Source: Guillardia theta CCMP2712
Lineage: Eukaryota > Protista > Cryptophyta
Length of the DNA stretch: 64,000 bases
Direction: 5' to 3'
NCBI RefSeq assembly: GCF_000315625.1
Contig: NW_005434657.1
Location: 286,045-350,044, forward strand
This document shows positions 7,721 to 54,320 of this stretch, piece by piece. Made by a program: the position numbers and the translations under genes. Positions within the stretch are counted from its first letter, which is position 1; each line of letters opens with the position of its first letter. The notes below the pieces were generated by a model. The model saw nothing but the letters and a program-made list of their open reading frames with translations. It was not told the origin of the DNA and did no database searches.

Positions 7721-8619
7721 GTCCGTTGGAAGAGCGAGGGGTGTGAAAGGATGACAGAGAGGAGAGGAGAGGAGCAAAGGAGGAGGGAAGGAGGGGATAT
7801 GGAAGGGAGGAGGAGGAGGAGGAGGAGAGACGGTAGGAAGGAGGAGGAGGGGAGACGGTAGGAAGGAGGAGGAGGGGAGACGGTAGGAAGGAGGAGGAGG
7901 AGCTGCTACGTTCTCATCCCCCTCACCCCTCCTGCGCAGTCGCCTGCACCTGCATTCCTGAAGGCTCCGACAGCCGCCGTAGGTTATTCAGGCTCCCCTC
8001 AGAGCATTCAGTAGAATTTGGAAAAGGCAGAGAAAGTGGAGTGGTACAGGGGGTACTACATGAAGGAGGGGTAAAAAATAAGGGGTGGTCAGGGTCAGCA
8101 AAGAAATCATCAATGTACAAAGGGGTACAATCATACGAAAAATAAGGGGTAATGGTGGTATAGAAAGGACCTATAGGGTAGGTGGATTGATTAGCAGCTC
8201 ACGGGTAGGGTGGGGTACCTCTTGAGAGAAAGGCAGTAGAGGATCCTTGTCAAACATGTCGGATGCAATCGAAGAGTTGCGGGGGAGGGGAGGAGGAGGA
8301 GGAGAAGGAGGAGGAGGGGGGGAGGGGGGGGTGATGAGAGGGAGGGTGGAGGATGAGGATGAGGAGGAGGAGGAGGAGGAGGAGGAGGGAGGAGAAAGTC
8401 AAGACGGGGAGAGAGGGAGGAAGAGAAGGAGGATAGGGACAAGAGGGAGGAGGGCAAAGAGGAGGTTAAGGTATGTGAGAGTGAGGGTTGTGTTTACAGG
8501 GCCAAAGGAATTAGCAGAGTTAGGTAGCAGAGTTCAGGAAGTACTTTGAAACGCTTCTCTGATCTCGTTTGGCAGCTCAGTAATGTTGTAATCCCCATCA
8601 CCAGCAATCTTGTGGAGCG

Positions 8620-11600
8620 ATGGATCGTCGGCAGCTCATCGCCATTACTTTGGCCTTTGTGTGCTTGGGGATCTTGATAGCTGAACTGCTCGTCTACAAC
8701 ATCGGCAGAAGCTTAAGGATCCTCAAGGAGCCGCCGCAATGGGGGCTGACCAAGTTCCTGATGCGCCTCGGGCTCCTGCGAGCGAGGGGAAGGAATGAGG
8801 TGCGAGTAAGCTCACGCCCCTTGCTTCTTCATCACCCCCGTGCTCTTCCAGCTGCCGCCGCCGAAGATGACGAAGGAGGAGAAGTTCGTCATGGTGGTGA
8901 CCATTCTTGAGCTGGCCCTGGGACTGGTAAGTGGTGCTGTGCCTCTGATTCCTTGTTGTTGTCATGCCATGTGAAATGCTCTCCCCGATTGCAGGTCAAC
9001 TTCGTCGCAGCATGGCTTGCCACGAGCTTGCCGCTGTATGGCATCCAGAAGACTTGCGATTACGGGATAGAGATGGAGAACAAGTGCTCTGACATGCAGA
9101 AGGGTTGCAACCTGAGGTGCGGGGGGCCAGACTTCAAGACCTGCGGGTCTCAGACCTGCAATGTGGACTTCTGCTCTCAAAACTTCGGCCTGATCTTGGA
9201 GGTGTGCCCACTGAGAGGTTATGTGGTGAGCGAGCGCTGACTTGACATCTTGCAGCCGATCGCCGACGCTTCTGACTTGTGGAGCAAGCTGAACAACGAG
9301 ATCACAAACGTCCAGTGTATCGCCAACCTCATCGGTGTCCTCTTGTCTTGGGCCATCGTCGCCGTTCCGGGCCTTCTTGCAGCTCTCCGCACGTCAGTGG
9401 AAGCTCTGATGTTTGCCAACATGTCTTCGGCGTGCTGCTCTCCCCTCTTCCTGGGGCTGGGACTCTGGATTATCATGTACACCAAACAGATCAAAGACGC
9501 GTGCGGGAAGCATCCCAATAGCCCCACGCTCTCGTGCAGTGACTCGATCGCCGAGGGCCTCTTCGATGCGCTGTGCGCACAGAACGACTTCGGGATAGGG
9601 CTGACGGAGTCCTACATCCTGCTGTCCTCCGTCACCCTCATCATCCAAGGGTTCGCTTGCGCCATCTTCTCCACGGTGATGTACCTACAGCGGAACGCGT
9701 TCGTGGCGCACAACAAGAGGAGGCTGGAGCTGTTCAAGAGCGCGGTCTCGTTCGAAGAGATGATTCGGAGCGAGAAGAGGCAGAACGCGCAGCGGCAGCA
9801 GGAGCGAAACATAATCGACAAGACTCTCGTCTTCAACGAAGGGTTCGTCCAGTTCCCCGGGCTGCTGCAGATCTTCAAGGGCCACACCCGGGGCGTGAGC
9901 TGCATGCAAGTGGTAGAGTTCAACGGCAGGTCGTGCATGATCACAGGCAGCCAGGACGGCAGCATCTTGATCTGGTCGATGGAGACAGGTACCTACCTTC
10001 GCAGGATCTCCGCGCACTTCTCCTCGGTGGTCGGCGTGAAGGCCTTCTGGAAGTTTGACGTCAACCGGCAGTGCAGGAAGTCGCGGGTGATGTACAAGAC
10101 GACATCCCCCATGTGGGACGAGACGGATGCTCAAACGTTCCACATCAAGTCGGACAACCAGCTCATCTGGGTCAACCTCTATGACGCGAAGAGGTATGGC
10201 AACGACGAGCTGATCGGAACTTGCACGTTCCTCCTCTCGGAATACAAGAAATCTTCCAGAGATTTCACGAACGTTTTGTCTTTGAAGTTGTACGACTTGT
10301 CCGAGTTCGCTGGGCAGACGACGCAGGAAACTTCTGACAAGCCGATGGAAAGTCACCAGGTGAAACCCTCCACCTCCTTTCTCGTCTTCCTATGTCTAAT
10401 CGCCTCCTGCTTCTCCTCCTCTCGGTCCTTTCTGCCCCCTTCCCGCTTCGTTCCTTGTCTCGTCCTCGTTCGCCTCTTTCTCCTCCTTCCTCTGCCTTTC
10501 TTCTCGTCCTTCTCATCCTTCGCCAGATCTTCTCCTATGGCAAGTTGGTCGCCGGGATGAGCAGCCAGCCTGAGAGCAACAAGACGTCTGGACTTCCGCC
10601 TGCTGTCCCGTTGGTGGGAACGATCGTGTTGAGGCTGGACTACAAGGAAGATCCGAAGAGCTTCAGCCTGGTCCCCTTTGAAGCCAGGATCATGACGGAG
10701 GGTTTCCTCTCCTCTTGCAACCCTTACCTCCAGTTCAACGTGGAGGAGACTCCGAGCCAACACTTCGTGTCGGCGGGAGATGACGAGTGCAAGCTGTGGT
10801 GCATGGAGACCGGGAGGTGCCAGATGGTGTACAAGGGCCACTCGAACCTCGTGACGTGCGTCGAGGTGCTGAGAGTGATGAACAGGGACGGGGAGAGGAA
10901 CTTCCTCCTTTCTGGCTCTCAGGACTGTACCGTCCGCCTCTGGAGCATGCTCAAGGGAACGTGTCTGAAGATCTTCACAGGGCACCTCGACTCCGTGACT
11001 TCCCTCTGCATCCACAACAAGTTGGACAAGGAGGAGGAGCAAGTGGACTACACGGACTACCAGGAGGACGTGGAGGTGAGGATGAAGCTCCGGTGCAGGG
11101 AGAGGGAGAGCGCGGATCGCATCTCCTACACCGTCGACGTCAACATCGAGAGGCTGCGAAACACGCAGAGGCTGGTCGACAAGGACGTGAAGAGCGTGTG
11201 GCTGACAGTTGCGTGCGGCTCCTCCTCCTTCTCCACCAGGTCGAGCTCTCTCCGATCCAACTGGATCTTCGAGGAGAAGTACACCTTCGAGGAAGTGAGC
11301 AAGTTGGACCAGCTGGTCTTCGTCCTCTATGCTGGGGGGAAGCTGGGGATGAAGAAGTACCTGGGATACGTCGAGTTCGAGGCAGAGGAGGTCATAGCTA
11401 ACGGAGGGGAGGAGGTGGACGAGGACTGGTACCCCGTCAGCTTCTTCCCTAGGAGCAGCTTCTCCCTCTTCACCGGCACGGGGAACGCGGAGGGCAAGGT
11501 TCGGATGTTCGACGTCCGGACGGCCGTCTGCGTCACGGAGGCAGGGGCGCATTCGAGCATGGTCAGCGCCCTGGTGATCGCGGACATGTACGGGAAGCAG

Positions 11601-12530
11601 AGGCTCTTCAGCTCCTCCTGGGACCGCACGATCAAGATCTGGAAGTTCACCCCGAGCTCCATGGAGTGCGTCCGCAGCATCGCGCTGGAGACTGACGTGC
11701 TGAGCATCTGCGTCGACCGCCTGCAGACCCCCTACACGTGGGTCATCACCGGATGCAGCGACTGCACTGCCAAGATGGTGAAGCTGCCGGTGGAGGACGT
11801 CGGGAGCTCGCGGTGGAAGAAGGTGCTGGGGAGCATGCTTGACAGCCCGAGGCTCTTCTTCGTCATCATGACTTGCATCCTGGTGGACATGATGTCCGGG
11901 ATCCTGACGGACTTCGCCATCTCCTCGGACAGGAAGGACTGCTTCGGGAGAGATTCCTACGTCTCCCTTGCCATCACAGGCTCCATCCTTGCTTTCTTCC
12001 TCATCGAGCTCCTCCTGCGCATGCTCGTTCACGGCAAGAGCTTCTTCGTCCCCTGCTCCAACTGCCTGTGGAACTACCTCGAGGTCCTCATCATTACCGT
12101 CAGCATCGCCGTTGTCGCCTTCAAGGCTTACAGTGACTGGACCACGAGCGTCCCAGCAGGAGCAGAGCACCCGGTGATCAGCTGCCACAACCACCCCGAA
12201 CTGTGCGGAGACGCCTGCGCCACCACCACCACCACCACCACCACCTCCACCTCCTCCTCCTCCTCCTCCTCCTCGCCGATCAATCTCAAGGCCATGCAGA
12301 AGTCTTTTACAGCTGCGAGGATCATCTCGAGAATCGCCATCGGTCTCAGGATCCTCCGCATCATCGCAAAGGCCTCGCAGCTCGCTCGCTCCTACCTCGG
12401 CAAGACAGTTGCGACGTTCCATGGGCACGAGAAGCGGGTGAACGTGGTGGCTGTGGCAGGAGGAAGGGAGCAGCGGATCTTGACAGGCTCGGAGGACGGA
12501 TACGTCCGCCTATGGGATGTGGCGTCTTGA
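8620..12530 (+). CDS. Membrane protein: ~5 N-terminal TM helices with Cys-rich loops, then a 7-blade WD40 propeller with two inserted C2 domains and an inserted S1-S4 voltage-sensor domain
   Basis: Introns at ~8800-8851, 8927-8994, 9202-9255 and 10360-10526 join the ORFs. WD repeats start GHTRG, AHFSS, GHSNL, GHLDS, AHSSM, (LETDV) and GHEKR. C2 motifs KTTSPMWDE..VNLYD..DELIG and IFEEKYTF..VFVLY..KYLG. VSD S2 FFLIELLLR, S3 WNYLEVLII, S4 ARIISRIAIGLRILRIIAK. Confidence 0.85.
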
Positions 12531-12962
12531 GGGGGAGGAGCCGGAGAAGAGGAGGGGAGAGGAGAGAGAGCGAGAAAGTTGACAGAGAAAGGTGGGTCAA
12601 AGGAAGAAACGCGAGGGAGAGAGACGAGGAAGGGGAGGCCTGACACGTAGGACAGACAGATGCGATGGTGCTTGAGGAGGAAGAGGAGGAGGAGGAGGAG
12701 GAGGAAGAGGAGAAGGAAGAGGAGGATGAAGAGGAGGATGAAGAGGAGAATGAAGAGGAGGAGGAGGAGGAGGAGGAGTCATAAATGGATCATAAAATGA
12801 AGCGTCAGCTCATAAAAATCTTTATGTGTGTAGAAATCGGTCGTCCTCGTCGGGCGCGCTCCTTGGGGAAAGAGAGGCATCCATGCTCTATGAGGGGAAG
12901 GGTTGTGAGCATCGGGAGAGTAGGAAGGGAGCAAAAGTAGTGAAGGAGACAGAAGGGAAGAA

Positions 12963-13238
12963 GAGGAGAGGAAAGGAGTGAAGGCCATAGATGGGAAGAA
13001 GAGGAGAGGAAAGGAGTGAAGGCAATAGATGGGAAGAAGAGGAGAGGAAAGGAGTGAAGGCCATAGATGGGAAGAAGAGGAGAGGAAAGGAGTGAAGGCA
13101 ATAGATGGGAAGAAGAGGAGAGGAAAGGAGTGAAGGCCATAGATGGGAAGAAGAGGAGAGGAAAGGAGTGAAGGCAATAGATGGGAAGAAGAGGAGAGGA
13201 AAGGAGTGAAGGCAATAGATGGGAAGAAGAGGAGAGGA
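12963..13238. repeat. 38-bp minisatellite, ~7 copies
   Basis: Unit gaggagaggaaaggagtgaaggc(c/a)atagatgggaagaa starting at 12963, 13001, 13039 and so on. Confidence 0.95.
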
Positions 13239-13517
13239 GTGTAGAGATTAAATGAGGTGTGATGAGAGAGGAAGGGAGAGGAGGAGGGAGGAGAGGAAGA
13301 AGGGGAGAGGAGGAGGGAGGAGAGGAAGAAGGGGAGAGGAGGAGGGAGGAGAGGAAGTAGGGGAGGGGAGGAGGGAGGAGAGGAAGAAGGGGAGGGGAGG
13401 AGCTTGCCTGAAGGCTTCGGACGCTGGAAGTGTCGGTGGTTGGACGGCCAAGGGGAGTAGAAGCGGAAAGGCTAGGTGGATTCTGCTTCTTTCCTGCAGG
13501 AAGCCGAGTTTCAGAAG

Positions 13518-23380
<9,863 letters not shown>

Positions 23381-46477: not shown

Positions 46478-48281
46478 ATGCTGGCGAAGAGGAACTCTCC
46501 TCCTCGACTCTCCTCGTCCTCGAAGCATCGGACCAGCAACAGGCGAGGCTCTATCTCCATGTCGCCCGAGCGAGGACGGGGAGGGAGGCACGAGGAGGAA
46601 CGCTCGTTCGAGCGGACGAGGAGCAGCCACGAGGACTCTGGCATGTTCCAGAGAACAAGAAGCAGCGCAAGCAAGGGCGGTAGGGAGCGAAGACGGTCCA
46701 TCTCCTACTCCCCGTCCCGTCATTCAAAGCATCGGAGCAATAAAGAGTCTCATGGCCATGAGCTGGTAGCAGGCAGGAACTCTCCTCCTCGACTCTCCTC
46801 GTCCTCGAAGCATCGGACCAGCAACAGGCGAGGCTCTATCTCCATGTCGCCCGAGCGAGGACGGGGAGGGAAGCACGAGGAGGAACGCTCGTTCGAGCGG
46901 ACGAGAAGTGATGAAAGCAGTAGGAGCAGATGGTCAGACACTGGCGAGTCGAATCCATACAAGGTAAGACATATCGATGTTGGAGCATTTGACTTGAACC
47001 TGCAGGACTTGGCGTTGGAGCAGAGGAGACGCGCGATCCTGAATGCGATGGAGAGGGAAGAGGATGCTTTCAGATTCAGTGATTCAGCATTGCGCGACGA
47101 CGACGACTTCATGCGGCAGGCAGTGAGCAAGTCAGGATGGTTTCTCAAGTACGCTAGTGATCGTATCCGAGACAACCCAATCATCGTCAACGCTGCCATC
47201 TCAAACGATGCCAAGTCTCTCAAGTATGCGAGCTCGGGTCTGCGAGACAACTACAGCATGGTTGCCAACGCCATCGACTTGCTCCCCGGGGTCCTTCAGT
47301 ACGCGAGTGCAAGGCTGAGAGATAACAGGAGCCTTGTGCTCAAGGCTGTGTCGGTAGATGGGAATGCCCTTCGGTTCGCAAGCCATGAGCTGAGAAAGGA
47401 TCGCTCGCTGGTGTGGAATGCTGTCTCGTCGTGCAGGGAAGCCATCCAGTACGCCGACAGGCGTGTTGCTAGCTCCATCGACCTTGACGGTCTCGATGAA
47501 GTTGAGAGGAACAAGATCGGTCATGCAGAAAGGTCGTGGAAAGGAGGGGATCAGTCGCACGAAGATTCTGGTCTTGACAGCCTGCTGTACGAGATTTCTC
47601 GAGTGCCAGCCCAGAAAATGTCTCGTTGGGGCATGATCGAGCAGGACAGGATTGTGCTCGACGCTGAGTTCCTGCGGAATCAAACTAGTTTTGGATCCTG
47701 CTGCAGGGTGGCAGAGAAGGAGGAGAAGAAGGAGGAATCCGAAGCTCAAGCACTCCAGGTCTTCTTTCGTTTCCTCCCTCCTCCTCCCTCCTCCTCCCTC
47801 CTCCTCCCTCCTCCTCCCTCCTCCTCCTCCTCCTCCTCCTCCTCCTGCTCTGCTCCCTGTGTTCCGCTGCTCCTCCGCTCTTCTGTTGACTATCCTACAG
47901 CGCAAGGTCGACATCCAGCAGCTCAGGAGCCGAAGAAACGACTACCCGGTCGTGCGAGACACAGAGATTCGGTACCGACATCCTCGGCATCCACTGCCGC
48001 TGAAGCGAGTTGGCAGGCAGAACCTGGAGAGGCAGATCAAGCAGCTCGAGCAGAAGTCAGCACAGAAGATCTGGGAGGAAGACATCACCAAGGTCAGGAC
48101 AGCTGAATGCTCTTCGTCCCTGCTGACATGTCCACCAGCCGAAGACAACATGGCAGCGCAGCGAGGCGAGTCAGAGGGAGATGATGCTTGCGCGACTGCC
48201 CAAGGAGGAGAAGCATGTAGAGAGCAAGTTCAAGGCCGTGCGATGGAAGCTCAAGTGGAGCGAGAAGACGCCGGTCAATGA
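46478..48281 (+). CDS. DUF4116-repeat protein with RS/SP-rich N-terminus
   Basis: Five ~25-aa repeats of type LRDD..V..AV...G..L.YAS (~47050-47460). N-terminal RNSPPRLSSSSKHRTSNRRGSISMSPER block is duplicated. Confidence 0.8.
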
Positions 48282-48451: not shown

Positions 48452-51400
48452 CTACCTTGTGCCCTTGCTCGCTTCCTCCGCCTCGTCGATCAGAAACTGG
48501 ACCCACTCGTGCCCAATCTCTGCCTCCGTGATGGTCTCCCATGTGGTCACCGGAGCACTCAGCAGCCCGTACAGCCCCCACTTGCTCGGCTGCAACAAGA
48601 TCAGATACGCTTGCTGTCTTCCTCCTCCCTCATCCTTCCCTCCTCCTCCTTCCCTCCTGCCTCCTCCCCCACTTCCTCTCCTCCCCGTCGCCTCCTCTCC
48701 CTCCCCGTTCTCGTCCCTTCTTCCCCTCCCGTCTCTTCCTCCTACCCTGACCTGCTTCAGTCGCTTGGCCCCGTGCTCCATTTTGTGCATCTTCTCCTTG
48801 TCCATACCTGCATCCGATCAGCTCACCGACGCCTCGACCCACAAAAAATCGAGAGTAGGGAGGGAGGAGGAGGTAGCGAGAGGGAGGAGGGAACGAAGGA
48901 GGTGGGAGGGGAAGAGGGGGAAGACCGTAAGATGCTGCAGAGCAGCTTGAGGACTTCGTCGCTTCCAGCCTTGTTCCCATCGAAGTACGAGATCATCACG
49001 TTGCTGACGAGCCGCCTGCTCCACCTCAGGCCTGCTTNNNNNNNNNNNNNNNNNNNNNNNNNNNNNNNNNNNNNNNNNNNNNNNNNNNNNNNNNNNNNNN
49101 NNNNNNNNNNNNNNNNNNNNNNNNNNNNNNNNNNNNNNNNNNNNNNNNNNNNNNNNNNNNNNNNNNNNNNNNNNNNNNNNNNNNNNNNNNNNNNNNNNNN
49201 NNNNNNNNNNNNNNNNNNNNNNNNNNNNNNNNNNNNNNNNNNNNNNNNNNNNNNNNNNNNNNNNNNNNNNNNNNNNNNNNNNNNNNNNNNNNNNNNNNNN
49301 NNNNNNNNNNNNNNNNNNNNNNNNNNNNNNNNNNNNNNNNNNNNNNNNNNNNNNNNNNNNNNNNNNNNNNNNNNNNNAACTTCTTCCAGCCAATTCTTAC
49401 GGTTTCATTCCCTCACTCCGTGACTGCCTTTATGCCTTTTTCCGTCGAACTCCGCATCCTCTTCCTCCTCCTCTTCCTCCTCCTGTCTCCTCAACCCCCC
49501 CCCCCCCCCTCCCTATCTCCTCGCCCTCAGACTTCTCTCTTTCCATCATTTATTTGCTCCATCACCTCAAGCTTCGCCGACTTGTCTTGCAAGTCTTGTT
49601 GAAGCTGTTCAACCGTCAACTCCCTAAACGTCCTCAACTTCATCAACCTGTCCGTTGAGCTTCCGGAGCTTTTCAACCTGCAAAGCAGCAAGATCACTGA
49701 CCCGCATCATCCTCAATGTCTTGCTCAACCTCCTCCTCCTCCTCCTCCTCCTCCTCCTCCTCCTCCTCCTCCTCCTCTCCTCTTCGACCGATCCCCTCCT
49801 CTCACCTCGAAGTTCGACTCTGACATCTGCTGTTCATGGAACTGACGCGCAAGGATAAGCAAAATGTCTCCATATGCTGACGTCATCACCTGCTCGAGGA
49901 CCTGCTGGATGCGATCTCTCTCAGCTAAGCTCCTGCACCACATCCGTGAGAAGAGAAGGGAGGAGGAGGAGGAGGAGGAGGAGGAGGAGGAGGAGGAGTA
50001 TCACTTGTCTCTCTCTCCCTCCAACGTCTCGCACGACAGCCTGAGCTCCCTGATCTCCGCGTCCCTCTTTTCCATTTCCTCCTTGTGCTGGCTCTCCGCC
50101 TCGTATAGCACCTGCTCGGCCTGTGCTGTGGTTGAGCGGCGAGATGGCAAAATGTGAGGAGCGGGGAACCTCTTCCTTCTCCTCCCTCAGCCGCTGCAGC
50201 TCGTCCTCAAGAATTTCAACTTCCTGTCCTCTCACTTCATTGTCTTCCGACGTCTTGGCCACTTGCGACTGCGACATCATCGTCGTCACCTCAGCGCGAC
50301 CTGCTACCTCCTCGCATACCTTGAGCCGCTCTAGAGCTCCCCGCAGTACCAGCACCTCCTGCGCGAACCGCTCCTCTGCCTCGGCAGCAGCATCCTGCTT
50401 CACCTCCTGCTCAGTCAGGTCACGACAGGCAAGGAGAATGCAGGAGGAGGAGCCGACTTGCACTAGGCGATGAGCCTCTTGGAGCTGCTCTGACAGGTCG
50501 CGGACCTGGCCCTTGAGGAGGTTGACTTCCTTGTCCCGGTCGTCGAGCTCGTCCTGTAGCTCTTGGATCGTAGCGCGGAGAACGGACGACTGGAGGACGA
50601 GGAGTGAGGAGGAGGCGGAAGGAAAGGGGTGGCATGTGCACGCACCTCGGACATGAGCCTCTCCGTCATTTCCTTGGACTTACCGGCGGCCCTCTCCTGC
50701 TCCCTCACCATCTCCTTGTACTGCTGCAGCTGATTGGTCATCTCCTCCCTCTCGACCTGCGGGGCGTCAGTCGATCCTCAGCGCTCCCGCCGTGCACGTC
50801 GCCAACCTCGTCCTCCTCGTTGGACATCTGCTGAGCTCGGAATGCCTCCAGCTGCTCGATTTTGGAGATGAACCTTTCGATCTGCTGCTCCTTGTCCTTG
50901 AGCTCCTTCTCGATGGCCTCGATCGCCGTCAAAGCGTCGCCGCTCGGGCAGCGGATCGAGAGAGAGCTGCAGACAGCTCGAGTCTTTTCCACGACACGCG
51001 ACATCTGCTGGACAGCAGTCATGCACGGAGACTCTAACAAGGTCAAAGCCAAAAGCAGCAAGTATAGTCACCTCCTCGCTCTGTTTTCCCCTGCTGCCGT
51101 CCTCCAACAACCTCTTGTGGTTGGACCTGACGGAGCCCACGAGCTGCTCCACATTAACACTGAAGTTGTCCGGGCGGAAGGGGAGCTCCAGGAGAAGGCA
51201 CATCTCCTCAACGTCCTTCATGAGCTGCGGCACCTGAAGGAGGGAGAACGATTTGTGTGACTCCATGAGGCGGACCAGGTCGTCCACATCGCACCCCACA
51301 GCCTGTGAGATCTGCCAACGCAGCTGACTGACACTTTCACTGGACGAATTCGTACTCTCAATCAGCTCCATCTGCTCCTTCAGGCTCGCCTGTAGCTTCT

Positions 51401-54320
51401 CCCCTAGGCTCCGCTTCCCCGCCTCTGCCGCCGACACCTCCTCCTCTAGCGCCTTGATCCTCTCCTCCATCGCCCCCTGATCTGCCCCTGCCTGCTCGCC
51501 CTGCCTCTTGAGCCCCTCGCACTCCTCCTCTGCCCTCTTCAGCGCTGCCTCGAGCGACTCTACCGTCTCCGTCAGCTTTTGCCTCTCTGCCTCTGCGGTC
51601 GCCGCTGCCGCCTCCAGCTCCCTCCTCCCCTCTGCCTCCTGCGCTGCTTCTGCACGCCGCTCCTCCTCCCTTGCCAGCGCTCTCTCCTCCGCTGCCCCCA
51701 TCGCCGCCCTCAGCGCCTCCAGCTCTGACGCTAGCCCTGCCCTCTCCTTCTCTGCCTCCTCAAGCTTCCGTGATGCCTCTGCTGCTGTTGACGACAGTCG
51801 CTCCTTCTCCTCTACAGCCGCCTTCAGCTGGGACGACATCTCCCTCACCGCTGCCTCCTCCCCCGCTGCCAGCGACGACATCTGGTCCTCCAAGCTCCCC
51901 TTCGCCTTCTCCAGCTCCTCTACCTTCCCGACCAGCTCCATCTGCTCCTTCAGGCTCGCCTGTAGCTTCTCCCCTAGGCTCCGCTTCCCCGCCTCTGCCG
52001 CCGACACCTCCTCCTCTAGCGCCTTGATCCTCTCCTCCATCGCCCCCTGATCTGCCCCTGCCTGCTCGCCCTGCCTCTTGAGCCCCTCGCACTCCTCCTC
52101 TGCCCTCTTCAGCGCTGCCTCGAGCGACTCTACCGTCTCCGTCAGCTTTTGCCTCTCTGCCTCTGCGGTCGCCGCTGCCGCCTCCAGCTCCCTCCTCCCC
52201 TCTGCCTCCTGCGCTGCTTCTGCACGCCGCTCCTCCTCCCTTGCCAGCGCTCTCTCCTCCGCTGCCCCCATCGCCGCCCTCAGCGCCTCCAGCTCTGACG
52301 CTAGCCCTGCCCTCTCCTTCTCTGCCTCCTCAAGCTTCCGTGATGCCTCTGCTGCTGTCGACGACAGTCGCTCCTTCTCCTCTACAGCCGCCTTCAGCTG
52401 GGACGACATCTCCCTCACCGCTGCCTCCTCCCCCGCTGCCAGCGACGACATCTGGTCCTCCAAGCTCCCCTTCGCCTTCTCCAGCTCCTCTACCTTCCCG
52501 ACCAGCTCCATCTGCTCCTTCAGGCTCGCCTGTAGCTTCTCCCCTAGGCTCCGCTTCCCCGCCTCTGCCGCCGACACCTCCTCCTCTAGCGCCTTGATCC
52601 TCTCCTCCATCGCCCCCTGATCTGCCCCTGCCTGCTCGCCCTGCCTCTTGAGCCCCTCGCACTCCTCCTCTGCCCTCTTCAGCGCTGCCTCGAGCGACTC
52701 TACCGTCTCCGTCAGCTTTTGCCTCTCTGCCTCTGCGGTCGCCGCTGCTTCTTGTAGATTCCGGATTATTTTATCCTTGCGCTTGTTTTCAGCACTCTGA
52801 TCAGCCGCGTTATTGTTTTCTAATTGGCTCCGATTCATATCCACAGTTTGAAACGGTTCGCTAGATTGGGCGGTGAAGGAACTGCGGAAGCTGCTGAGCA
52901 GCTCTCGGACTGACGCAAGCTCAGGCTTCAGTTTTGGTTTGTCTTGCGTATAGACTTCACAAAGACTGGTCGCTTGTTCGATAGTGTTCAGAAGCAGCTC
53001 TATGTTTTCTGTAGAAATCCCCTTCACCTTTGGAATCTTCCTCTCTCGCTCTTGTTGCAACTTGAGCAGGAGTTCTTCCTTTTCGGTTTGAAGTTGGCTC
53101 ACCTGTGCTTGGAGATACTCTCTCTCCATCTCCAGTCCTTCCACTTCCATAGAAATCCCTTCATGTGCCGATATCATCTGTATTCCTGTGGAAGTATGTT
53201 CCTCGGGACCATCAACTCCAACACCATTATGGTCGCCTTCGGAATAACGATTGTCTTCCGCATCCTCGGCTGCTAACTTGGTGAAAGTGCTCGACATTTC
53301 AGCGAGCTCTTCTCTCATTGCATGAGTCACATCCTTCGTGACTGATTGAATCGATCTGCTCACAGCCGACGATTGCTCCCAAAGCTTACTCCCCATTTCT
53401 GAGAACTTCACGTTCGACGTTACAGCTCTCATCAAAGGGGCTGATGGTCCACTTGAACCCTGATCAGCCTGGCCACGCACGCTGTCCGGCTCATCTTGTT
53501 TCCAGTCATCATCTTGATACGGAACTTCATGAAAGCCAGTCACTTCTTCTAAGCCGTCACCGTGAGTCATCGGAGCTTCGAACGGGATCCATTCTTCATC
53601 CTCTTCACTCTTTGTATCTTGGTTGCCAACCTCTCCATCGTCCGCCCATTCTTCGTCATCGTTGGATATCGTTGTTATAACTTCTTTAAATCCCTTCATT
53701 CCCACTCCCACCGTGCTTGACATCCCCACGATTTCTTCTTTCATCGCTGAGGCAACATCCTTCGTTACGGCTGAGATGGAGTTTCGAACAATCGATGATC
53801 GCTCCCACAGTGTACCTCCGACCTCGCCAAGAGGGAGTTTCACGTTTGACTTGACTGAGCTGAGGGCGTTGGTGCCTCCCGCATAAACTTTTCCCAGCAA
53901 CCCTTTCATGGGGGAGTTTTGCACTCCCTCGTTGCCCTTGTTTGCCGTGGTTTCCAGAGCGATGCTTTGAAATGGAGCATCGTACGCGTCAACTGCTTCC
54001 TGTGCCTCAAGAAAACTCTGAGCTTGAGAGTCGACATGTTCCCTCTCATCTTGATCCCACTGTTCAGGGCTCAAGTGTTGCCCGTTTCCACCAGCCGCCT
54101 CATTCAAGTTTCCTAGTAAGATTTCCATGATGTCAATGAGCAAGAAAGCAAGGTCAATCAGCACAAGCAAGAAGGACCTTCAGGAGAATCCTCTCGTTCT
54201 TCGATATCGTCTTCATCTACCACAAGAATTCAAATCAGACTTCGTCGACGCTGCAGAGTGATCAGAGTCGTCAGAGGATCACCTGTCAACTCCTCATCTC
54301 CGAGGTTTGCAACAATGGCA
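48452..54320 (-). CDS. Golgin of the GMAP-210/Rud3/GC3-GC4 class: long coiled coil with C-terminal GRAB domain and GA1 motif
   Basis: More than 1100 aa of E/K/A coiled coil. Exon ~48928-49015 reads RRLVSNVMISYFDG...EVLKLLCSIL (GRAB). Last exon has IGHEWVQFLIDEAE (GA1-like). Spans an N-gap. Confidence 0.75.
51363..52748. repeat. 570-bp in-frame tandem repeat (~2.4 copies) inside the golgin
   Basis: cagctccatctgctccttcaggctcgcc recurs at 51363, 51933 and 52503. Confidence 0.97.

Follow-up and report, generated by a model that had tools for sequence, protein, structure and literature searches.

Sequence and model evidence for a pore-less voltage-sensor domain inserted in a WD40 propeller with two C2 domains in the cryptophyte Guillardia theta

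Introduction

What might a voltage-sensor domain (VSD) do when its last helix leads neither to a pore nor to an enzyme, but to a strand of a WD40 propeller? The question is raised by a gene on the forward strand of a 64,000-nucleotide stretch of the Guillardia theta CCMP2712 genome (contig NW_005434657.1, positions 286,045 to 350,044; hereafter the window, with position 1 its first letter). Known pore-less sensors drive an enzyme, as in voltage-sensing phosphatases (VSPs), drive an exchanger (SLC9C1) or conduct protons (Hv1), and a review from 2024 names no VSD proteins beyond channels, Hv1, TMEM266, SLC9C1 and VSPs. A sequence-only reading of the window had described a single protein with about five N-terminal membrane helices, seven WD40 repeats of which the second and fourth are split by C2 domains, and a pore-less VSD between blades 6 and 7, and had named it a candidate for a new class of voltage-sensing protein. 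Such it would be, if voltage coupling holds.

Sequence comparison and structural modeling indicate that this architecture is real and conserved, and it is undescribed as far as the literature was searched: consistent with the same claim in that reading, publications on the architecture, on VSDs of cryptophytes and Guillardia, and on permuted C2 domains, searched mostly without subscription papers, yielded no WD40/C2-coupled VSD.

Results

Searches with the window gene used its exons one at a time, and the whole-protein structure prediction was made instead on an ortholog, P0006, a transcriptome-derived single chain of 1,208 residues from Geminigera cryophila with the same parts. The gene model has five exons (Table 1) encoding 1,189 residues; all four introns are GT-AG and phase 0, and the joined frame contains no internal stop. 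Exons 1, 3, 4 and 5 align with P0006 in order (43, 38, 29 and 34% identity, respectively; E 7e-13 to 4e-108), while the 25-residue exon 2, queried alone by BLAST, did not match it. The five-exon model is thus supported by clean splice sites and by colinearity with P0006. RNA coverage of the gene is near nil (4 reads in one 2026 run, contigs only in three older runs); no read covers a splice joint, and the gene model represents predicted splicing. Three short X1 contigs are all exonic, and the one beginning 4 letters 5' of exon 5 is uninformative on the joint, since its extra letters are compatible with the intron end and the exon 4 end alike. The central observation nonetheless does not depend on splicing, since a single exon contains WD repeats 3-6, C2b, the VSD and repeat 7. 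Coverage by DNA contigs extends over 8400-12596 except for short gaps, with no contig spanning 12209-12303.

Could these observations reflect separate genes, a mis-assembly or chance hydrophobic helices? The unseen splice joints, the stretch that no contig crosses and the lack of a Pfam match for the VSD segment alone would allow it. The VSD and its adjoining WD repeats nevertheless lie within one exon, DNA contigs span the gene barring short gaps, and full-length orthologs and paralogs from transcriptomes and metagenomes keep the same order; an artefact is thus largely refuted and, in our judgment, extremely improbable, and the claim of a single protein-coding gene stands.

Membership of the membrane segment in the S1-S4 voltage-sensor superfamily, as a pore-less representative, is indicated by profile and model evidence. 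Queried alone, the window segment had no match in Pfam and weak matches in the PDB (TPTE2, E 0.023; a mouse Hv1 chimera, E 0.22). From 1.84 billion representatives, a search recovered 37 relatives. In one search the open frame 10392-12527, which begins with 45 codons of intron, served to set the length range only, and the scored region lies inside exon 5. A VSD profile of 20 members, drawn from these relatives and from paralogs in the genome, aligns over S1-S3 with Cav/Nav sensors, mouse and human Hv1 (E 5e-8 and 2e-5) and TPTE2 (E 6e-5), stopping before S4 because the long S3-S4 loop breaks the match. Together with the presence of all four helices in the P0006 model, the profile upholds the proposal that they align and fold as a VSD. 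A Pfam search had been suggested as a check, with a divided outcome: WD40 and C2 (in repeat 2) were matched in the window gene, but Ion_trans was absent from its VSD alone and present in 12 of the 20 family members.

The S1 Asp, S2 Phe and acid, S3 acid and S4 arginines are parts of a working sensor (PMC13095418), and the corresponding residues of the window protein (D976, F1013, E1016, E1041 and R1120/R1124/R1130/R1133/K1137) lie where they had been claimed. Within the family, the S1 Asp is kept in 17/17 members and the charge-transfer centre (F1013/E1016/E1041) is equally constant: the S2 aromatic in 19/19 (18 Phe, 1 Tyr), the S2 acid in 19/19 and the S3 acid in 20/20. Arginine conservation at R1120, R1124, R1130 and R1133 is 15/15, 14/15 (1 Lys), 15/15 and 13/13. 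Identity to P0006 reaches 46% in the VSD, 52% in S4 and 50% in the last repeat, against 20-26% in the C2 domains. Furthermore, an Asp-Cys-x-x-Arg motif in the S1-S2 loop (D993, C994, R997) is kept in 18/18 members and C1082 of the S3-S4 loop in 14/16 relatives; since the motif is invariant and the loop cysteine nearly so, C994 and C1082 would be likely partners in a disulfide holding an outer lid. A Thr/Ser microsatellite tract (12222-12275) within the lid of the window gene is not present in orthologs.

As anticipated, neither a pore nor a phosphatase follows. No hydrophobic segment that could form an S5-P-S6 pore occurs after S4 in the window gene or its full-length relatives, and neither a PTEN-like phosphatase nor its C2 domain was found there in a Pfam search of the window exons; S4 is followed by one WD40 repeat and, directly after it, the stop codon (12528-12530).

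That last repeat appears to close a seven-blade propeller. Pfam WD40 matches occur in exons 4 and 5, and an AlphaFold model of P0006 residues 335-1208 (17 alignment rows, pLDDT 76.5, pTM 0.66) superimposes on the seven-blade propeller of LIS1 with Z 37.8 and 2.1 Å over 294/313 residues (model range 19-871). Seven-blade WD40 scaffolds as a group (LIS1, G-beta, COPI, RACK1) give Z 35-38 at ~2 Å over 290 residues. Because the LIS1 alignment extends from the propeller's first strand through the repeat that follows S4, that repeat closes the ring in the model, with the closing blade made of the strand after the N-terminal membrane bundle and three strands after S4. The count of seven repeats in the sequence-only reading is thereby borne out, as is, in the model of the ortholog, its proposal that the propeller is completed by what follows S4.

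The site of insertion requires some revision. The VSD occupies the c-d loop of structural blade 6, and C2a and C2b the a-b loops of repeats 2 and 4. In the P0006 model, strand c (630-636) is followed after one residue by the S0 helix (from 638), and S4 is one 39-residue helix (790-828) that ends three residues before strand d (832-836), such that in both sequence and model the two ends of the VSD attach to adjacent strands of blade 6. The VSD follows strand c of repeat 6 and lies within blade 6 itself rather than, as had been proposed, between blades 6 and 7; likewise, the link from S4 is indeed short, but the strand that it reaches completes blade 6, with the closing-blade strands coming after. 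In WD40 propellers the bottom face is composed of the a-b and c-d loops, and the top face is where the majority of partners bind (PMC3419727). The VSD, C2a and C2b would thus all leave from the bottom, which would be the membrane side, leaving the partner-binding top face free toward the cytosol.

Table 1. Features of the WD40/C2/VSD gene in the window.
Feature	Position	Strand	Remarks
Exon 1, residues 1-60	8620-8799	+	Start codon, TM0 (~8635-8697), basic cytosolic loop; 43% identical to P0006 1-60
Exon 2, residues 61-85	8852-8926	+	First half of TM1; GT-AG flanks, phase 0; fills P0006 alignment gap between exons 1 and 3
Exon 3, residues 86-154	8995-9201	+	End of TM1 and Cys-rich first outer loop; 38% identity, E 4e-16
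Exon 4, residues 155-522	9256-10359	+	TM2-TM4, helical linker, WD repeat 1, start of repeat 2, first part of C2a
Intron 4	10360-10526	+	167 nt, rich in pyrimidines, length not divisible by 3; joins two long open frames; relatives continuous here
Exon 5, residues 523-1189 and stop	10527-12530	+	WD repeats 2b-7, C2b and whole VSD in one unbroken frame
Four-helix bundle TM1-TM4	8885-9687	+	TM2 9319-9384, TM3 9409-9477, TM4 9610-9687; two Cys-bearing outer loops
WD40 repeat 1	9862-9981	+	Pfam WD40; first strand (d) closes ring with last repeat (model)
WD40 repeat 2	9994-10799	+	d,a 9994-10050; b,c 10758-10799; a-b loop split by C2a
C2a	10066-10742	+	Circularly permuted, cut by intron 4; strand with loop-1 calcium Asp comes last
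WD40 repeat 3	10815-10946	+	Pfam WD40
WD40 repeat 4	10962-11513	+	d,a 10962-11018; b,c 11460-11513; a-b loop split by C2b
C2b	11070-11444	+	Divergent; aligned to P0013/P0015
WD40 repeat 5	11529-11645	+	Pfam and model
WD40 repeat 6	11667-11786	+	Degenerate, without GH; VSD after its strand c; model strands 592-636
Pore-less VSD	11808-12398	+	Family profile, Ion_trans matches, model
VSD S0	11808-11846	+	
VSD S1	11847-11915	+	D976
VSD S1-S2 loop	Between S1 and S2	+	Invariant D993, C994, R997
VSD S2	11955-12026	+	F1013, E1016, R1020
VSD S3	12066-12131	+	W1037, E1041
Outer S3-S4 loop (lid)	12132-12305	+	Long; C1075, C1082, C1086
VSD S4	12309-12398	+	R1120, R1124, R1130, R1133, K1137, R1143
WD40 repeat 7	12402-12530	+	Strand d completes blade 6, a-c form closing blade; stop; 50% identity to P0006
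TM, transmembrane helix.

Both C2 domains are where they had been proposed, the one in repeat 2 by a Pfam match and the one in repeat 4 by alignment to relatives and the model. Pfam recognizes C2a (E 5e-8) over model positions 24-95 only, in exon 4, and the relative P0013 gives an unbroken alignment that begins in the second half of synaptotagmin-1 C2A and continues into the initial part of C2B; C2a is circularly permuted. C2b has no Pfam match in the window gene; it aligns with the canonical second C2 of P0013 and P0015 and is all-beta in the P0006 model. The eight-strand sandwich is common to synaptotagmin- and protein kinase C-type C2 domains, relative to which C2a represents a third circular permutation, its chain opening lying between the loop-1 strand and the strand that follows. 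Relatives of the window protein keep all five calcium-ligand acids (P0013 and P0015 in both C2 domains), whereas neither C2a nor C2b of the window gene has the full set: the C2a positions are E580, N587, D464, K466 and E472 (3/5 acidic, not conserved in orthologs), and loop 3 of C2b has A791, G793 and K799 where relatives have Asp, Asp and Glu, leaving no acidic ligand in that loop. With this set lost, lipid docking by the window C2 domains, if any, would be calcium-independent.

Hydropathy of the window exons gives five N-terminal hydrophobic segments, mirrored by five peaks in P0006 and agreeing with the roughly five helices noted earlier; TM1, as read from the sequence, spans the exon 2/3 junction. 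TM0 and a basic loop precede four helices with two Cys-rich loops, and six cysteines of the exon 3 outer loop are common to the window protein and P0006. The charge distribution, particularly the basic loop after TM0, suggests a topology with the N-terminus and Cys loops outside and the propeller inside. The bundle is kept in Geminigera, in Geminigera-like metagenome copies and in exon pieces of a third lineage, and a genome search found no paralog of it elsewhere, making it single copy.

The bundle had no match among Pfam or PDB sequences, and homologue searches returned P0006 itself or nothing, besides the metagenome copies. Its AlphaFold2 model (pLDDT 60) has fold matches (VIA) to FceRI-beta (Z 15.7), sarcospan (Z 15.0) and tetraspanin (Z 12.9), to de novo bundles (14.9), and to TTYH, TARP-type and LRRC8 chains (overall Z 10-16 for this pLDDT-60 model). 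Foldseek returned nothing at E < 0.1, language-model matches to MS4A, sarcospan and tetraspanin were weak (0.76-0.78), and the second loop lacks the tetraspanin CCG motif. A tetraspan-like fold may be assigned with low confidence: four membrane helices, a short inner TM2-TM3 loop and two Cys-bearing outer loops are common to MS4A, sarcospan and tetraspanin proteins, from which the bundle differs in its larger first outer loop, its extra TM0 and its lack of a sequence match. Kinship with Tweety (TTYH) was rejected; the five-helix layout is the same and weak Foldseek rows recurred (Z 12.9), without sequence support.

The relatives that had been called for in cryptophytes and other sequences were found (P0006, P0013, P0056, P0103 and a paralog) and fall into two subfamilies. 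Subfamily I (the window gene, P0006, P0001 and P0008) has the N-terminal bundle and calcium-ligand-poor C2 domains, while subfamily II (P0013, P0056 and P0103) consists of full-length database proteins without the bundle and with mostly canonical C2 domains. The one-chain architecture occurs in the transcript-derived P0006, P0056 and P0103 and in P0013, an intronless genomic open reading frame of 929 codons; P0015 derives from 3.3-kb contigs carrying its whole reading frame. Every named source is a cryptophyte (Geminigera cryophila, Rhodomonas salina), and many matches are metagenomic. The G. theta paralog on contig 31 (L006:2800-6175, minus strand; G000:C31 ~476800-480200) has many introns and shares both the WD40/C2/VSD order and the lid motif with the window gene; it is closer to subfamily II, and no match to the N-terminal bundle was found in it. 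Separately, P0053, a 92-residue member of the P0013 cluster filed as Klebsiella pneumoniae from a 279-base contig, is probably contamination.

In S4, basic residues of the window protein occupy positions 1, 5, 11, 14, 18 and 24, counting from R1120, and position 21, Q1140 here, is Arg or Lys in 8/13 relatives. The 1-5-11-14 arginine pattern is common to cryptophyte VSP-like proteins, in which S4 leads to a PTEN domain, and to a VSD-ankyrin fusion. In a lidded VSP-like relative from Rhodomonas, the arginines of this pattern align with TPTE2 (9c49) residues R153, R159 and R162; its positions 21 and 24 fall opposite R168 and R171. A VSD tree, which leaves animal VSPs out and whose root rests on long branches and is unreliable, sets Hv-type sequences (on a separate long branch) and six-transmembrane (6TM) sensors apart from the rest, and groups VSP and ankyrin fusions together (96/93) with two WD40 groups beside them. 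These comparisons tentatively group the window sensor with cryptophyte VSP-type sensors and not with Hv1. The signature S4 Trp of Hv1, which precedes the second Arg (PMC4621752), is absent from all family members, position 1132 being Leu in the window protein and Leu, Val, Ala or Ile in the others; the Asp at the Hv1 selectivity position in S1 is present (D976; 17/17), and Ci-VSP has the same S1 Asp and is non-conducting.

Several further genes and proteins surfaced in these searches. A lidded VSD followed by ankyrin repeats, rather than a propeller, is encoded at L005:1-3940 (minus strand; G000:C44 ~437500-441400; Ion_trans E 1.5e-7, Ank_5 E 9e-6), with relatives P0014 and P0024. At least five VSP-like genes (L012-L015 and L018, on G000 C150, C14, C4 and C21) have the 1-5-11-14 arginines leading into a PTEN-type start. 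P0021, P0032 and P0041, one of them from Rhodomonas salina, are VSP-like proteins with the Cys lid and link the lidded sensor to phosphatases. P0030, P0036 and P0040 contain at least two tandem Hv-like sensors, with the S4 Trp and a signature of one Arg and one Lys.

Discussion

Membership in each known VSD class was considered and rejected. Hv1 resembles the window protein in its stand-alone VSD fold and S1 Asp, but the window protein lacks the S4 Trp and the C-terminal coiled coil, differs in arginine spacing, and runs from S4 into a WD40 strand. The 6TM voltage-gated channels have the S5-P-S6 pore that is missing here. TMEM266 and SLC9C1 likewise have a VSD without a pore domain, and in SLC9C1 it drives a non-channel effector in a multi-domain chain (PMC13095418), but Pfam detected neither an exchanger nor a CNBD in the window protein; TMEM266 has a coiled coil and the Hv-type S4 Trp (PMC4621752), which is absent here. 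The closest likeness is to VSPs (Ci-VSP, Dr-VSP/TPTE2, TPTE), which have in common with the window protein a pore-less VSD, the S1 Asp, S2 Phe and acid, S3 Trp and acid, and an S4 that continues into a cytosolic effector, with an S4 pattern as in the cryptophyte VSP-like proteins. VSP membership fails for want of a PTEN-like phosphatase after S4; the VSP linker motif is missing too, the effector is a non-catalytic propeller, the sensor sits inside the effector fold and is tied at both ends, and a Cys lid and five extra membrane helices are added. In kind, the protein falls among pore-less VSDs joined to a cytosolic effector, and it would work, if at all, like a VSP with its enzyme replaced by a scaffold. 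The closed seven-blade propeller itself is common to LIS1, G-beta, COPI and RACK1, from which the window protein differs in that its bottom-face loops accommodate three complete inserted domains, one of which crosses the membrane four times. New here are the N-terminal, putatively tetraspan-like bundle and the split into two subfamilies.

The best reading, to which we assign an even chance, is that of a voltage-adjusted membrane scaffold, for which we infer the voltage sensing, the coupling and the partner binding. A nine-helix membrane protein (TM0, four-helix bundle and VSD) would hold the propeller flat under the membrane, and a change in voltage would carry the S4 arginines past the S2 Phe, as in VSPs. 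This motion could tilt the rigid propeller, or lift it, together with its C2 feet relative to the bilayer, or else strain the closing blade; tilting or lifting is the more likely of these because both VSD ends are tied to neighboring strands of one blade. The shift would alter the access of a partner protein or lipid, or the contact between C2 domains and bilayer, such that the output would be binding rather than catalysis or ion flow. In subfamily I the C2 domains may make calcium-independent lipid or protein contacts, while subfamily II, with calcium-type C2 domains and no bundle, may combine calcium with voltage. That S4 motion repositions or strains the propeller, thereby switching the binding of partners at the membrane, we hold to be slightly less probable than an even chance.

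Several observations weigh against a voltage-adjusted scaffold. The S4 spacing is 4-6-3-4 rather than the canonical every-third pattern, with only positions 11-14 and 18-21-24 in step. The register aligned to TPTE2 puts Q1140 of the window protein at Ci-VSP R3, and a second register, counted back from the phosphatase start, leaves the Ci-VSP R3 and R4 positions neutral. Voltage sensing by the cryptophyte VSPs with the same S4 pattern is itself putative. Furthermore, the propeller was modeled on an ortholog from a shallow, 17-row alignment (pTM 0.66), and WD40 propellers are rigid, rarely allosteric scaffolds.

Alternatively, the VSD may be blind to voltage, serving as a membrane anchor or as a receptor whose disulfide-held loops sense a ligand, metal or pH and signal through S4 to the propeller. 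The irregular S4 and Q1140 would fit such a role. So would two other features: the loop residues that vary least lie outside the membrane (D993, C994 and R997 in 18/18, C1082 in 14/16), and the long lid is retained in WD40 and ankyrin fusions and in some of those with VSPs. Among VSDs, TMEM266 and mammalian TPTE offer a precedent, neither having a known output driven by voltage. An anchor, however, needs no four fixed arginines, three counter-charges and charge-transfer Phe across cryptophyte lineages, and ligand sensing is compatible with voltage sensing. We therefore regard a voltage-blind sensor as unlikely, at roughly one chance in five.

Two further possibilities involve ion flow, and both seem improbable to a similar degree, at about one chance in ten each. 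The VSD might conduct protons or other ions, as an Hv1-like or omega current, with the propeller and C2 domains as regulatory or targeting parts: the S1 Asp at the position of Hv1 D112 is invariant, Hv1 is among the best single-domain PDB matches of the profile, and neutral inner S4 positions could open a gating pore. The missing S4 Trp, the lack of conduction by Ci-VSP despite the same S1 Asp, and the separate long branch of true Hv-type sequences all argue otherwise. The bundle, instead, might oligomerize into a pore or bind a channel as an auxiliary subunit that the VSD gates across the propeller, consistent with its conservation in at least three lineages and with fold matches that include MS4A, tetraspanin, TTYH, TARP-type and LRRC8 proteins (Z 10-16). 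Such Z scores are usual for helical bundles, however, the model has low confidence (pLDDT 60) and the Foldseek search was empty at E < 0.1; since the second subfamily keeps the whole propeller-C2-VSD unit and lacks the bundle, that unit appears to work without it.

If a voltage-adjusted scaffold is the correct reading, membrane potential would be read directly as protein recruitment by an interaction scaffold, an output class of voltage sensors additional to pores, proton conduction, phosphatases and exchangers. The gene would also be one of several cryptophyte fusions (WD40/C2, ankyrin and PTEN) built from one lidded VSD, would point to electrical signaling in cryptophyte algae, and could provide a starting design for voltage-dependent recruitment tools. 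The topology is unusual in its own right, with a four-helix membrane domain inside a propeller blade and tied at both ends, together with a new C2 circular permutation; it would be a natural test case for S4 motion coupled to a soluble fold. The architecture stands even if the sensor proves voltage-blind.

Other features of the window

Directly downstream of the WD40/VSD gene lie about nine repeats of 38 nt (12858-13313). On the minus strand, 13989-18909 holds long repetitive frames rich in Arg and Trp, with a block that is duplicated internally; they have no Pfam match and are reminiscent of Sfi1-type centrin-binding repeats. A 1,130-codon frame at 50778-54170 (minus strand) has a weak, short match to TelK_N (E 2e-4), and a DUF4116-repeat protein (E 7.5e-40) is encoded at 46478-48106 on the plus strand.

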